Positions 29,683 through 40,346 of a DNA stretch of 64,000 nt are shown here, piece after piece; position 1 is the first letter of the stretch; the number at the start of each line of letters is the position of its first letter. The position numbers and the translations under genes were made by a program. Origin of the DNA: Hyphochytrium catenoides (Eukaryota; Protista; Hyphochytriomycota). Location of the stretch: assembly GCA_900088475.1 (NCBI GenBank), contig FLMG01002864.1, positions 1 through 64,000 on the forward strand. The letters run 5' to 3'. A model generated the notes under the pieces. It was not told where the DNA came from and searched no databases. It saw only the letters and a program-made list of their open reading frames with translations.

Positions 29683-30607
29683 GGTGCTTCTGAAGCCGAT
29701 GATGGCGGAAGAATACCTTTGTGAGGGAACAAGAACAACACATATGCATGGACGCAGGGTAAGGAGAGAGCACACGCGCGCGTGAGAGAGAGAAACAGCG
29801 AAAGAGAAAGAAAAAGCAACCCTAAGTGCACATCTGGATTAGGTTCTATTCGGGTTGCTACAAAGTTCAGATTCTGGAGCAGCTGAAGTGACGCAAACGT
29901 AGAAGAGAACGGTATATATACAGCTACAGGCTCGACAAGAGTGCTTAAGACCTTCACTCCGGGACGGTTCGAAGAGGGATATGGTCTAGCTTATAAGATG
30001 TACTTGCCCAGTACCTAATATAGGGGCTTTCAGCCGCCAGGCTCAAAGTCCTGGCCGGATCTACGCTGAGAAATTGGTGTGCTTTCAATCCTCGTCCTGG
30101 ATACCTCACTTCCTTGTATAGGACCAGGAAAGTCTACTCAGCGCGGAGAAGTAAGCAAAGAATAGAAGACGCAGGAAGAGATAAGATATATTGCTTTCAT
30201 TACCAAGTTAGTACATCAAAATGAACTACGTCTCTTTCGTCATTACCCAGAAGCAGACAGCGGGTTGTAAGGTTGTAAATGTCATGCGAGCGCCCTTCCT
30301 TACGCTGCCATCTAGTAGATAAAGTCCGACAGTGGCACTCCCATCTTTCGAAATATCATCTGGATCTGAGCCGCAATAACTGACATGTCGTGCTAGTGCA
30401 AGTATAAGGGGTTTGTGTGCTTGCAGTCACAGTGTGTGATTGTTGGTGAAGAGGAGAAGCATAAAATTTGACCACACCAGACAGATTGTTTGGTGAGAAC
30501 ATTTCTCATTGGATATAGGACAAGCTTCGATAGATCTGAAGCCTCTCCGTCCTTAGTATATACTCCTGTTGAAGACATCGCAGCCGCATGAGCCTCTCTT
30601 GTCAAGC

Positions 30608-33600
30608 TTAATCATCCTCAATATCGGTGGACCTCCTGAAGCTTTCCTCAGGCTCCTTCAACGATACAGAATCAGGGACGGCACCGAGAGGAAAGTACTC
30701 ATGTTCGATACATCCGTAGAAGACCTTGAAGATCCGAAAGCCCTATCAATCCCGAGGCAGAAAGTGCGTTAGAGGCAGGAGAGTTTGATGTATTGAAGTG
30801 TGCTAGTTAGTCTTTGAAAGTAAAAAGACTAACAATGGATCCGAGGTAAAAGGACTTGAAGGACACTGTAAACTAGCTGCAGACAGGAGGAGAGGCCGTA
30901 GTGGGTTACATCTACCGGCTGTCTGTCCAAGTTGGAGCCGCAGGCAGCCCCAGTGGTCACCATATCCACAGCTGCTAGAGGACCTTCATCTGCATCTTCA
31001 ACTCTCCTGGGCCTGGGGAGCTCTCGGGCTGGGACGCGTCCTTCTGAGTTGCGGAGAGCGTGGCCGGCAAGGAGGGCTTTGGCCTTCAATTGTTGCAGCA
31101 GGTCCATGGTTATACCTCGCTCCTAAGAACAGACCCATTCAATATATCAAGACCAAAGGCACGTACACAGGGACGGTGCCTGAGGTGGTTACCTCTGGGG
31201 GAATGTTTAGCGAACCAGCAGGAGTGTGAACCGCGTTTTCGCTCTCGGGTTCCTCGCCCGGAAACATAACTGGCTCCTCACTGTCCTTGAGGAACCAGGG
31301 GTGGTGTCTACGTGCAGAGGGTACATTTCAAAGTCCAGGAAGAAAATCATCGTGGAGTACTATAGAGTGGACCACCAAGCGCTCTTAGTAGAGAAGTGAA
31401 AGTGCGAGACGCCCCACTTTGCACTTATGCAAGAGGGAAAGGTGGGGACCACGGAGCCATGAAGAGGATGTAGGCCCTACTCCGAACAGAATCAAGACTA
31501 GGAGAGAAAAGTGATAAACATATCGACAGGAAGAAACGGAGGTGAAGGAGGCGTCGACTCACCCCGCGACGATTATATGTTGAGAGCCGACTTTAGCAAT
31601 CTCCAGTTCACGTCTGAGCCACTCTAAGTGCAAGCATCAGCTAGCCTACTCTCTTTTCATGAAAGAGGTCATAATCCTACCGCTCTGTCTGGCACGTTTA
31701 TGTTCCGTCTTTTTCTGATAGATGAATAGCGATGTATTCAGCACTAAGAGACAGAGGCCCTGGAACCTGGCAAGCCGGTTAGCTTTTAAAGTGAAGTATG
31801 GACATGTTTGCGTCACAAGAAGGGAGAGCAATAAGACACGAGTGAGAAAGACGCAGCCAAACAGGAGACAGATCCAAACCAATATAAACTCCAGGATGAT
31901 GGGGAAGACCAAGAGCCAGATCATGTATGCCAGCTAGACGAAGAGTTAAGAGAAACTCTAATCGCAAGGAACAGGAAACAGTGATCTAGACCATGTATGT
32001 GCTGAGCAACAACCCTGAAGAGGAAGAAGAACAGTCGGCCTTACCAGAAGCAAAAATAATCGTCGCCATACCAATCCCTGTATGCCTCGAGGCCCTCTTC
32101 AGTGAGACCCGAGCCACTAGCCCCAATGTCCTGATCTCCACAAGCGAACAGCTGAAGAAGCGAAATGAAAAAGGGAAGACTTAACGAGTCCTGGAACTAA
32201 TGGACTTCCCCGTTCACCATGTCTACAGCCGTACCATGGGTATGGTCTCAGAGATGTTGCACATGACCCTTCTGACTTTCTCTGCCTTTTCCTTAACGTC
32301 CAGTGATTAGTGGCGCCTGCAAAGGTGAAGGACATACATTAAAAGTACCTGATGACTGGCGTGCTTGGGATCGACATTGGTCAAATCCCCAGTTATGAGT
32401 ACAAAGCTTGGCCTCAAACGGTTAACATGAGCCACGGTCTGGGCCAAAAGCGATTCATCTTCTGCCGTCGCACCGAATTGGATGTCTGATATCTTTTAGC
32501 ATCATAACAAAATAATCAGTTCAAGGGTGAGGCCATTTCTCTATCTAGACCACTTTTATGGCGTTCTGGAAGATCACTCGTACCGCCAGTCAAAGATTTC
32601 CCTAATCAATCTCTCAGCATCAAGTCACTGAATTAGAGCTTTGGACATGCCTGAATGAAGAAAAACGGCTTCTCCTTCCATCCTATCTGATTACTCATCG
32701 TAAAGGGCGGATATCTCCTATTGCGTGTCCGCTGGAAGCGCCAACGAAGAGGGTCCTCGTGAAAAAGCTGAGCCACCACTATCAGAGGCATGCCACGGGC
32801 ATCAGCAAACCATTGGCCTTCTCCTTTTTCATATCCTTCTACTAAGGGCCGGTCTTACAACCTACTCACCTGGAAGGTGGAGGATGTTATGCCTCTCTAA
32901 CAGGTGGAGTACTTCGTTTCGTTCTCTTGGACCCAAGTTGCTTAAAGCGCCCGGCATAAAGTTGAATTGGCCATCCTCATCAGGTACTGACGGGGACTTG
33001 GCCGCTGCATACTCTCGGATCCGAGTCACGAGCTTCCTGACGCGGAGATAAGACTCTGATGGCTCCGGCGGTCCTTCCAACATTCTCTGCCTCCAATCTA
33101 CGCCTTTGAAAAAAGGATGTGCTGAAAATGTATCCAACATGTCGATTAGCAATTAACAGCTTTCTTGGGACCATTAGATTGGACCCAGAGGCGGCACTAC
33201 CTAAGATCGAGGTCATATCGTCATCCAGGCCCAATCTATCCGAGATGTTCCTGGCAAGCAAGCCCATTATTATGCTTTTCGCCTCTTCAGAAAAGTGGGA
33301 AGGCAGATCGTCGGTCGTCAGGCCCTGCTTAGCCTTGAGCATGGTCGTATATACTCCACTGGTTTTGAAGGGAGGAAATCCATCTAAGAGCTGATAGAAT
33401 GGAGAGAGTATCAGAGTCCGCTATACCCTAGTAGATCCACCAGTTCACTTGTTCCCTTTTCCCTATTAATCTCTTTCTGCTTCCATCAAAGTTTGCTTCC
33501 ATCGCTTTGTAGCGGCGGGGAGCACTCCACACACTTGGATACGATGTATCTATTCTAGGTTCCTCTCTATCCTGCCTGATCAGCTCCTTATTCGGTGGGT

Positions 33601-34818
33601 CCTACCTGAAAAATAATGTTCCCTAAAGCCCATGCATCTGCGTCGTACGATACATTCTTGGAGTCAATTGTCTCTGGCGACATGTACTCCGGCGTCCCTT
33701 AGTTCCACCCTTTGTTAGTTATCTACCAAGAGAGGCTAGTTAATGGCCCAACCGCTGGCTAAAGAAGAATCAACTCACCGACAAAGTTGGGCCCGTTTAA
33801 AGAGGCATCTCGCAAATCTTTTGCCGTGCCAAAGTCTATCAGTTTGAGATGGCCATCCCTCCCAATTACCATGTTCTCAGGCTTTAGATCTCTTCGGTAC
33901 ATTCACGGTTAGCAGGTGGGGAAAGAAGTAATGAGTTAAAAGGTAGGAAGGAGGTAGGGAGGACAAAGTAGTGAAACGGAAGCGAAAAACAAGGAGGGCA
34001 GAGAGAGAAAAGTGAGCGAGGCCACCGGCATCCGATGCCAAGTGTTAGACAGACGTTATTTTTCACTTCTTGGACATAGGGGTAGGCCATGTCAGACGCA
34101 GTGTTACCTATGAACTATTCCTTTCGAGCGTAAGTAGAGCAACGCCTGCACAATATCTGCCGCATAGAACTGAGCCAACCTCTCCCCGCAACCCACAGGG
34201 ACACCATCGTCCAACAAGCGCTCCCATAAGTCCCCTCCACCAGGATATTCCATTAGATAGTATAGACTTTCTGCATCCTGTGAAGACGGTGTGTGTGTTA
34301 GGAGTCAGGGGCCAGTCTCATTCACTAGACGGAGACATTCCCCTAGCAGACTACGTTACCTGGAAAGTGCTATACAGTTGGATGATGAATGGACTCTCCA
34401 ACTTATTTAGCACTTGCTTCTCCATAAGAAGCTCATTATGTAGATTCTTATGGCGGATCTTCAGCCGTGAGACTGTCCTTTTGTCAACCACTTTCAGGGC
34501 AAATTCTTCTCCACTCTTCTTGTGGATTGCATACTGTACTTGGGAACAGTTTCCCTAAGCCAAATATATGAATGTTAACGATCAAGAAGTACTATTCCTG
34601 CGGATAATGACAGAGTAGAGTTTTTCTAGACCTTACCGTGCCCAGGACCTTGCGAAGGTCAAATTCCTTGAGGAGCGGCTTCCTAGTTTTGTTCTTCACT
34701 GCAAGCAGAAGATGTTTCTGAGTACTAAGCATCCACACGGAAAAAACGAGGCCCCCATACCGCTTTCTATGTCATCGTCCGCAGGAGGGCTTGCAGAGGC
34801 ACCTGACTGTAGAGTCAT
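30608..34818 (-). CDS. PDK1-like AGC kinase fused to a CPPED1-like calcineurin-type metallophosphoesterase domain (17 exons)
   Basis: Kinase: LGT|GNCSQV, FALKVVDK, HR|DLKPEN, KLIDFGTAK, FV|GTPEYMSPE, DAWALG and HPFFKGVDW. The linker exon HLP|VVAQLFHEDP continues in frame into PFFFIQ|ISDIQFG, ITGDLTN, IPM|LFACGDQDIG, YGDDYFCFW, LVLNTSL, WLRREL, AG|HHPWF, LAGHALRN and GFRIFKV...IEHEYFPL. Stop TAA at 30608-30610. Confidence 0.85.
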
Positions 34819-35489
34819 GACCACTTTCCTCTGTACCTTGGGGCCTTTACTTCCCAGAGGTGTATCAGGTTCCTCGATACCACTTCCTCTGTATCTTTAA
34901 GCCTTTACTGCTTGGATGCGTATCAGGTTCCTTAGTGTCTTTGGTTCATTTCTTGAAGGCTAGAGGGCTGCTAATGGCTGGCCTTGGAGCTAACGACGGG
35001 ATGACGAAGCCTAAGCCAGAGCTGCATCCGGCGCAGCTGGCGTCTGGACTGTTGAAGCTAATTCTGAAGATTGCATCAATACGAAGCGGCACATATGTGA
35101 TAATCATCACTAAAACCGATACATTGATTCTTTTGTGGATGTTGTTCAAAATATAGCTCAGGCCTATCAACAATAGTCGGATCTGGGGAAAGATTCATAG
35201 ATCTCCACAAGTGGTAAGTTACGGTGCCGCACTCCTTTAGCTAGTCAGAGAGACAACAATTGAAAGAAACCTCAGCTTTCGTTGTATCTTTCATTGCGTT
35301 CTTTCTGATTGTTACGTGGAAGAACGGCAGCGCAGCAGAAGAAAAGGAAAGATCCTCCCCTCACATTCTCAGCCTTCAAATAGAGCCTTCTTTCTGATCT
35401 TCAACAGTACGGCGCCGCTCATTCTGCAATCTCCGCGAAGCTCCAGACAGTCTCTTCCAAGGATAACTGGACGGTCGCCTTCAAGAAAC

Positions 35490-36400
35490 ATGAGGTTCTT
35501 CAGTAGCATCGCCGTCATAGCGGCGCTGGTGGTAGCGATTTGTACTGCGCCAGCTGATGCAAAGAAGAAAGGCCCCAAAATTACCCATAAGGTCTATTTC
35601 GATGTCTCCATTGGAGGCAAGGATGCTGGTAAACGTCCTTATTGCTCTACACGCTTTAAGAGCTACCTTTGGGACTAAACGAGAACTCCCCCCTTCAGGA
35701 CGTATCGTCATGGGGCTTTACGGCAATACCGTGCCCAAAACTACCGAGAACTTCCGTGCTCTGTGCACTGGTGAAAAGGGACTTGGCAAGTCCGGCAAGC
35801 CTCTGCACTACCAAGGCAGCAAGTTCCACAGGGTCATTCCTGACTTTATGATTCAAGGCGTAAGACTATTTCAGTGAAACATCTAGGCCTGTACGAACCA
35901 CTTACCCTGTCCTGCAGGGTGACTTCACACACGGCAATGGCATGGGTGGCGAGAGCATCTACGGCGAAAAGTTTGAGGACGAGAACTTTAAGCTGTGAGG
36001 CGATCACCACACCTTTAATGCTCACTGCGCCTCTCTCACATGTTTGTCTCTCTTCTTTCCAGCAAGCACAAGGAGCCTGGTCTTCTCAGCATGGCAAACG
36101 CTGGAAAGAACACGAACGGCAGCCAGTTCTTCATCACAACTGTCAAAACCCCTTGGTTGGATGGTGGGTCTCTATGATCTTCTCTCTATCTTAGTCAAGA
36201 GTGGCACTACAAACTCTTAAATTTGCTAATCCGTAGGCCGCCACGTCGTCTTCGGCAAGGTTCTTGAGGGCATGGACGTGGTCAAAGCCATTGAGGCCGT
36301 GGGCACTGGTAGCGGCTCTCCCACGCAGGAAGTAGTGATCAAGAAGAGTGGAGAGCTTATGGATGAAGTACCGGAGGAAGGCGCTAAGCAGGACCTATAG
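35490..36400 (+). CDS. Secretory-pathway cyclophilin (peptidyl-prolyl isomerase, CypB-like), 5 exons
   Basis: Signal peptide [24 protein letters not shown], then [37 protein letters not shown]|[21 protein letters not shown] and WLD|GRHVVFGKV. The C-terminus is KQDL. Confidence 0.97.

Positions 36401-39312: not shown

Positions 39313-40346
<1,034 letters not shown>

Follow-up and report, generated by a model that had tools for sequence, protein, structure and literature searches.

Positions 30608..34818 (minus strand) of a 64,000-nucleotide stretch of the Hyphochytrium catenoides genome (positions 1 to 64,000 of contig FLMG01002864.1, assembly GCA_900088475.1; hereafter the window) raise the question of whether a protein kinase and a phosphoesterase are encoded there as one polypeptide and, if so, whether that polypeptide could both write and erase phosphorylation. 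An earlier reading of the letters of the window (the sequence-only reading) had proposed such a fusion, between a PDK1-like kinase and a CPPED1-like phosphoesterase. We find it very probable that the locus is a single expressed gene of a stramenopile-wide family, which encodes a kinase paralogous to PDK1, a linker and a CPPED1-type domain lacking motif residues.

A single spliced frame joins the two domains

We built a gene model from the minus strand of 30300-35200 by anchoring splice sites and then translating. The model has 17 exons within 34818..30608, from an ATG at 34818 to a TAA at 30610-30608, which splice to 2172 nucleotides (723 codons with no internal stop) and make up 52% of the gene span. 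The uninterrupted frame from kinase to phosphoesterase proposed in the sequence-only reading is thereby rebuilt, and the coordinates and junction strings given there are correct, including those of the phase-1 intron 8 (CCAG/GTGAGT...GATAG/TG; slashes denote splice sites or exon junctions throughout). The 16 introns measure 57-278 nucleotides; 15 are of the GT-AG type and one, intron 9, is GC-AG. All exon junctions sit in ungapped stretches of homologue alignments. The two motifs from which the kinase had been recognized, DFGTAK and FVGTxEYxSPE, lie at residues 181-186 and 198-208, the latter as FVGTPEYMSPE.

Pfam was applied to in-frame exon pieces of the window protein, not to the whole spliced protein. 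Pkinase matched collinearly over exons 3-7 (profile positions 10-68, 71-121, 123-152, 160-188 and 193-255). The only Metallophos match among the exon pieces was a weak one in exon 10 (E 0.14), and four pieces from the metallophosphoesterase (MPE) domain and linker gave no Pfam match. An Atlas search with exon 10 returned Metallophos clusters at 0.89 as neighbours, which we treat as a lead only.

Homologues joined the two halves more firmly. A search with exon 3 against 1.84 billion representatives gave 132 matches, and when the spliced protein was compared with these by local BLASTP, ~30 of the 132 aligned over both halves. The best homologue, P0032 from Aphanomyces stellatus (670 residues), is matched in one high-scoring segment pair covering residues 17-671 of the window protein, at 38% identity and E 2e-148, an alignment that by its score is far beyond chance.

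The fusion defines a stramenopile-wide family

We widened the search with a profile seeded with family members and window exons, to which cluster look-ups were added. At least 127 distinct proteins among those fetched align over both halves. The profile search reached the oomycete genera Phytophthora, Peronospora, Hyaloperonospora, Bremia, Albugo, Pythium, Globisporangium, Lagenidium, Aphanomyces, Saprolegnia, Achlya and Thraustotheca, and beyond the oomycetes Mucochytrium, Chrysophaeum, Nitzschia and Pseudo-nitzschia; the look-ups contributed Heterosigma, Chrysoparadoxa, Phaeomonas, a chrysophyte, Cantina and Nannochloropsis. Named family members are stramenopiles without exception (oomycetes, eustigmatophytes, raphidophytes, diatoms, labyrinthulids and Cantina). 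The suspicion in the sequence-only reading that similar fusions might exist in other kinomes of the stramenopile, alveolate and rhizarian (SAR) group was thus borne out, in the form of this family.

The architecture is not new, as it is already in public databases. Many members are labelled "AGC/PDK1 protein kinase" in the source databases, one record names both domains, and both Pkinase and Metallophos score above the Pfam cutoff in P0033, P0100, P0115 and P0065. Our literature searches found no paper describing a kinase–MPE fusion, and the Phytophthora infestans kinome paper mentions neither PDK1 nor a phosphoesterase accessory domain. Pfam does not detect the MPE domain in the oomycete members, which may explain the lack of papers. 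The window gene is an unannotated, fairly divergent member of this existing, apparently unstudied family.

The window protein carries the family hallmarks, namely the DFGTAK..LNGP[E/N]FVGTPEYM loop and an RxxxRH insert before helix C. Its closest counterparts are the oomycete fusion proteins, which include A. stellatus KAF0718849/VFT78664, Bremia lactucae XP_067814752, the P. infestans '3-phosphoinositide-dependent protein kinase, putative' and the Saprolegnia diclina 'AGC/PDK1 protein kinase'. They have the same order of kinase, conserved linker and MPE domain, are collinear with the window protein over 650 residues at 35-38% identity, contain an activation loop (LNGPNFVGTPEYM) identical to that of the window and, like it, have no N-terminal TPR. 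The window protein differs from them in being only ~38% identical to the best of them, in branching beside, not inside, the oomycete group, and in having retained more residues of the MPE motifs (D, GD, HH and the first His of motif V). Set against the stramenopile fusion proteins as a whole, the window gene stands out by its 16 introns.

In a variant of the architecture, N-terminal TPR repeats precede the kinase (TPR-kinase-MPE) in the ochrophyte-side and metagenomic members P0115, P0047, P0065, P0096 and P0054. P0036, a protein of 1615 residues matched in the exon 3 search, consists in part of six tandem kinase N-terminal segments, each ~27% identical to window residues 32-186. The annotated P. 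infestans model (L002 2110-3264) drops ~22 in-frame residues (GNLNTARHEDCLLTGGMPFVCT) just before HPFF, where the genomic open reading frame (ORF) reads through; either a small intron or a decision made in annotation may be the cause.

The phosphoesterase is of the CPPED1 type and has lost motif residues

The naming of the C-terminal half as CPPED1-like stands. Residues 379-723 (345 residues) align end to end with free-standing CPPED1-like and CpdA proteins, the best match being P0171 (E 9e-56), and they align with residues 3-294 of the 297 residues of a Ciona CPPED1-like protein (E 9e-35). For the intact MPE domain of a family member (P0115, residues 545-900), the best matches are free-standing proteins named "serine/threonine-protein phosphatase CPPED1(-like)" (Ciona, Oppia) and "CpdA". 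A phmmer search of the PDB with an intact MPE domain of the family found nothing, and a profile search of the PDB found no CPPED1 structure, reaching only purple acid phosphatases, GpdQ and Rv0805. The window domain shares with MPEs of the CPPED1/CpdA type (the Ciona and Oppia 'CPPED1-like' proteins and the IMG 'CpdA' proteins) the DxQ of motif I, FGxDYYxFW and a C-terminal strand of the form GLRVVKV..Y..L..P. It differs in sitting behind a kinase, in reading GDQD for GNHD and GHAL for GHxH, and in an insert of ~20 residues after motif V.

The class III phosphodiesterase signature, D-[x]n-GD-[x]n-GNH[E/D]-[x]n-H-[x]n-GHxH, is complete in human CPPED1 (PMC8366450). At the corresponding sites the window protein has D423, GD455-456, GDQD492-495, HH573-574 and GHAL630-633; the His of GNH[D/E] is lost, the Asn is replaced by Asp and the last His of GHxH is lost. 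In this superfamily, the first of these His residues is catalytic and the second is a metal ligand. Only 5 of 127 relatives (P0115, P0320, P0033/P0133 and P0100) have all five motifs intact, and most, including the nearest clade, the oomycetes, are more decayed than the window, while structural motifs such as FGxDYYxFWxGG..VLNS persist. Judging by these motifs, we consider it likely that the window phosphoesterase would have little or no enzymatic activity and would have been retained for a structural, regulatory, docking or ligand-binding role, as a pseudophosphoesterase attached to a kinase.

This bears directly on the idea, put forward in the sequence-only reading, of a writer and an eraser of AGC-type phosphorylation in one chain, in which an active kinase would be joined to an active phosphoprotein phosphatase. 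In its favour, CPPED1, a homologue of this domain, reportedly dephosphorylates AKT1 and PAK4 (PMC8366450), the D, the GD and the His of motif IV are kept, and a few relatives keep all five motifs. Such a protein nevertheless needs an active phosphoesterase, and the window has GDQD for GNH[D/E] and GHAL for GHxH, in a family whose oomycete branch has decayed further and whose intact members are so few, so we regard the proposal as improbable for the window protein. It is possible for the intact members, and the few ochrophyte-side relatives with five intact motifs may still link a kinase with a phosphoesterase activity. The existence of these rare relatives suggests that the ancestral fusion probably combined a kinase with an active MPE, which would then have undergone repeated catalytic decay with the fold retained.

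The phosphoesterase motifs are distributed over the distal exons of the minus-strand gene. Exon 9 (32651..32778, residues 378-420) contains the end of the linker and the N-terminal phosphoesterase strand KPFFFIQ, and it matches the N-terminus of free-standing CPPED1-like proteins as well as the fused homologues. Motif I (SDIQFG) and motif II (GD) both lie in exon 10 (32349..32492, residues 421-468), the exon with the weak Metallophos match. Degenerate motif III (GDQD, at 32139-32128) is in exon 12 (32045..32151, residues 488-523) together with WYGDDYF, motif IV (HHP) is in exon 15 (31193..31307, residues 572-610) and degenerate motif V (GHAL, at 31065-31054) is in exon 16 (30916..31122, residues 611-679), all three placed by motif alignments. 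The intervening exons 11 (32235..32291, residues 469-487), 13 (31681..31766, residues 523-552) and 14 (31563..31623, residues 552-572) are defined by the spliced frame and the homologue alignment. Exon 17 (30608..30742, residues 680-723 and the TAA) encodes a C-terminal strand, GFRIFKV..YFPLGAVPD, as in CPPED1, and matches the C-terminus of the Ciona and Oppia CPPED1-like proteins.

The kinase is a paralogue of canonical PDK1

Against solved structures, the kinase domain of P0032 scores best with human PDK1 (214 bits), followed by yeast PKA (182), SGK1 (175) and AKT2 (169). Exon 3 of the window alone gives 25.8 bits with PKA and 21 with PDK1 in the PDB, but this piece is too short to classify. 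The catalytic motifs of the window kinase are all present (Lys61, HRD, DFG and SPE). With canonical PDK1 (human PDPK1, 3QC4 and 1H1W; oomycete P0399, P0401 and P0416), for which the fusion family finds its best solved match, the window kinase shares DFGTAK, FVGTxEY, the Gly-rich loop GxGxxS, the absence of a C-terminal hydrophobic motif and the pocket residues Lys, Thr, Gln and Leu. It differs in having no PH_3 domain, in an Asn at the place of the activation-loop Ser, in a 5-residue insert and in its position in a separate clade.

To place the kinase, we inferred an IQ-TREE phylogeny of 46 kinase domains, with a single distant AGC outgroup on a long branch. A branch with 100/100 support separates the fusion family from canonical PDK1, with the window inside the fusion clade and the oomycete canonical PDK1s among the other canonical PDK1s. 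Within the fusion clade, the window and the oomycete members are sister groups (91/65), the ochrophyte members group together (97/91), and Mucochytrium and Cantina branch deeper. This order broadly mirrors the relationships among stramenopiles and points to vertical inheritance since an early stramenopile. In pairwise comparison, the window kinase domain is 42-53% identical to the fusion family (37% for Nitzschia) and 34-41% identical to canonical PDK1s.

Oomycetes hold both kinds of protein. Canonical Pkinase+PH_3 PDK1s and fusions are paired in Bremia (P0416 and P0006, respectively), Saprolegnia (P0401 and P0311), Pythium oligandrum (P0415 and P0317) and Lagenidium (P0404 and P0316), and PH_3 (PF14593) was seen only in the canonical group, the C-terminus of the window protein being the MPE domain instead. 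Together with the 100/100 split, this co-occurrence identifies the fusion family as a paralogue. The label 'PDK1-like' therefore holds in the sense that human PDK1 gives the best score, via P0032, but the kinase belongs to a clade separate from canonical PDK1, and the view that the phosphoesterase stands in place of the usual PH domain is not supported by the oomycetes, in which species with the fusion also keep a Pkinase+PH_3 PDK1.

The same comparison makes it distinctly improbable that the window gene is the organism's PDK1 orthologue with its PH domain swapped for a phosphoesterase. The database names of its relatives ('AGC/PDK1', '3-phosphoinositide-dependent protein kinase'), the best solved match and the kept PIF-pocket residues would all fit an orthologue; set against them are the presence of both proteins in oomycetes, the separate clades, the absence of the activation-loop Ser and the family-specific insert. 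This insert of five residues lies before helix C, between helices B and C, in an alignment with vertebrate, plant and oomycete PDK1.

The paralogue also departs from PDK1 at a regulatory position. The activation-loop Ser of the vertebrate ANSFVGT, which we take to be human Ser241, corresponds to Asn197 in the window; it is Asn in oomycetes too and Glu in most other members (NGPEF in 58 rows, NGPNF in 33). Since most members have Glu at this position and the window has Asn, we think it somewhat more likely than not that the kinase would need no activation-loop phosphorylation. At the residues of the PIF/phosphate pocket, presumably K115, R131, T148, Q150 and L155 of human PDK1, the window has K, K (for R), T, Q and L. 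As the pocket residues are largely kept, the kinase probably still docks partners through it.

The proximal exons encode this half of the protein. Exon 1 (34761..34818, residues 1-20) begins with the ATG, and the oomycete homologue alignment starts at residues 17-19 and passes the exon 1/2 junction. Exon 2 (34637..34698, residues 20-40) contains the start of the Gly-rich loop, GTGNCSQV, as placed by the spliced frame and motif positions. Exon 3 (34360..34554, residues 41-105; Pkinase E 5.3e-08) covers the kinase N-lobe with Lys61 of FALKV and, relative to canonical PDK1, the family-specific 5-residue insert (RLKIRH). Exon 4 (34108..34277, residues 106-162; Pkinase profile positions 71-121) runs from the hinge to the start of HRD. 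Exon 5 (33779..33891, residues 162-200) has RDLKPEN, DFGTAK and the activation loop LNGPN, whose Asn197 corresponds to Ser241 of PDK1, as given by Pkinase and the alignments, and exon 6 (33606..33697, residues 200-230) has TPEYMSPE, placed by Pkinase and motif positions. The kinase C-lobe is encoded by exon 7 (33201..33390, residues 231-294; Pkinase), and exon 8 (32870..33121, residues 294-378; spliced frame and homologue alignment) contains the kinase end HPFFKGVDW followed by a family-specific linker ending in ERHNILHLP.

Intron 8 is probably an old intron within one gene

Whether the kinase and phosphoesterase belong to one gene is decided at intron 8 (32779..32869, 91 nucleotides, phase 1, GTGAGT..GATAG). 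Reading through its donor leads to a stop after two codons (HLPGE and then TAG, 32864-32862), and within the intron, 13 nucleotides before the acceptor, an ATG (32791-32789) opens a frame that continues into exon 9. From the letters alone, a kinase gene followed, ~70 nucleotides on, by a free-standing phosphoesterase gene would thus fit equally well, and homology had to decide.

The exon 8/9 junction is gapless in homologue alignments, with ERHNILHLP/VVAQLF in the window facing RRKSVLHLPGIYPRF in Bremia and ERKGELKNPRIFRLF in P0115; across the two junctions of exons 8/9 and 9/10, alignments without a gap were obtained with Aphanomyces, Bremia and the metagenomic P0115. In addition, the P. infestans gene is interrupted by an intron one base into the codon following LHLP (CTG CAT TTG CCG G/gtaagt..acag/GG), which equals window intron 8 in codon position and phase. 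We regard this match as a strong indication that intron 8 is ancient and lies within a single gene. In P0115, TPR, Pkinase and Metallophos lie in one continuous ORF of 2748 nucleotides on a contig of 2923 nucleotides, and the Rhizochromulina, Cantina and Phaeomonas members are complete transcript-derived ORFs, so that in these relatives the fusion cannot be a gene-prediction artefact.

Two adjacent genes, namely a kinase of 380 residues ending at TAG 32864-32862 and a free-standing CPPED1-like protein of ~350 residues starting at ATG 32791, are thus very improbable. The stop and start signals are both present, CPPED1 homology begins only ~14 residues past the junction, and no RNA read crosses it. 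Yet the LHLP/xxxxxF region is one conserved block within the single ORFs and transcripts of relatives, the P. infestans intron occupies the identical codon and phase, the donor is a consensus GTGAGT, and the two genes would be spaced by only ~70 nucleotides.

The signals within intron 8 have a further aspect. Retention of the intron would give a kinase-only product of 380 residues, and ATG 32791 could start a CPPED1-only product; regulated retention of intron 8 could uncouple the two halves. The read-through stop after the intron 8 donor is not conserved in P. infestans.

Intron 9 (32493..32650, 158 nucleotides, CAG/GCATGT..AAAAG/AT) is the single GC-AG intron. Its junction is fixed to the residue by homology, FFFIQ/ISDIQFG in the window aligning without a gap to FFFVHIGDPQFG of P0115. 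The one GT-AG alternative (donor +4, acceptor +7) is also in frame; it yields FFFIQAYIQFG, in which the motif I Asp and one residue are lost relative to all homologues, and we rejected it.

The gene is transcribed, and haplotype differences concentrate in introns

Sequencing runs with near-identical sequence comprised three DNA runs of the organism, two soil/rhizosphere metagenomes and one probable RNA run. A contig of 162 nucleotides from run X6 skips exactly 33122..33200 (ends CT..AC on the plus strand), that is, the 79-nucleotide GT-AG intron 7, and confirms the 3′ junction of exon 7; because this intron is spliced as modelled, the gene is transcribed and spliced.

The DNA run X1 contains two haplotypes, each at about half depth, with many intronic substitutions and small indels, which fits a heterozygous diploid or mixed-nuclei organism. 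Among the differences listed within the gene span, which include at least 35 substitutions (34 from X1 and one from X6), 28 of 35 substitutions and 12 of 12 indels lie in modelled introns, and three of the seven exonic changes are synonymous; these counts cover part of the haplotype differences, with 81 further differences beyond them. The intronic concentration fits selection on the modelled exons. A decaying pseudogene or chance open frame, which the motif loss in the C-terminal domain and the lack of any available annotation might suggest, is hardly credible given 723 stop-free codons, intact kinase catalytic motifs, a spliced RNA-type contig, haplotype differences concentrated in introns and the conservation of the same decayed domain across the family.

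Pieces 95-99+% identical to the window over 33067-33342 occur in the soil/rhizosphere metagenomes X4 and X5 and in X6, a 2025 run. Their presence in the metagenomes indicates that the organism lives in soil.

Points that weigh against a single fused gene with an inactive phosphoesterase

Several observations count against our reading of the locus. On the side of the gene model, intron 9 requires a rare GC donor, and no RNA read or cDNA of the organism covers intron 8 or 9, the listing of RNA-only runs being empty and the sole spliced contig being that over intron 7. Given the stop after the intron 8 donor and the in-frame ATG, the two halves could be made as separate products, or an isoform could retain the intron. 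The representative and profile searches gave no protein more than ~54% identical to that of the window; the genome's own protein is absent from these libraries, and there is no independent annotation. On the side of the kinase, the single long-branch outgroup leaves the root of the tree unsettled, such that a paralogue of PDK1 cannot be distinguished from a sister family. On the side of the phosphoesterase, its proposed inactivity is read from motifs only; a metal can also be bound by Asp in the place of Asn, and motif substitutions are tolerated in some MPEs.

Neighbouring genes

Two other genes were noted in the window. The divergently oriented neighbour at 35490-36200 (plus strand) is a gene of several exons for a peptidyl-prolyl isomerase of the cyclophilin type, apparently with a signal peptide, as judged by eye from ORF translations, and an exon of a Rab6-like small GTPase lies at 39331-39675 (plus strand), taken from the ORF list.

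Implications for AGC kinase regulation in stramenopiles

The protein that we propose consists of an apparently catalytically complete AGC kinase, paralogous to PDK1, in its N-terminal part; a conserved, probably helical linker of ~80 residues in the middle; and a CPPED1/CpdA-type (class III phosphodiesterase-like) MPE domain in its C-terminal part. A more far-reaching possibility, which we offer tentatively and consider doubtful, is that alongside ordinary PDK1 stramenopiles have a second master-type AGC kinase, permanently primed by its Glu or Asn and controlled by a tethered CPPED1-type pseudophosphoesterase that would act as a sensor or docking module. If so, AGC kinases would have a mode of regulation that we did not find described in the searchable literature, and the window copy, with three of five motifs left, would represent an intermediate stage of decay.

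At the level of annotation, our analysis supplies a correct 17-exon model for a gene absent from the ORF track, with a GC-AG intron and with an intron position common to Phytophthora. The oomycete and algal proteins labelled "PDK1" are of two kinds, one of which carries an unrecognized, mostly decayed CPPED1-like domain, and the two have to be kept apart when PDK1 biology is transferred to plant-pathogenic oomycetes, diatoms and Nannochloropsis. The family as a whole provides a natural series for how a kinase-fused phosphoesterase turns into a pseudoenzyme.

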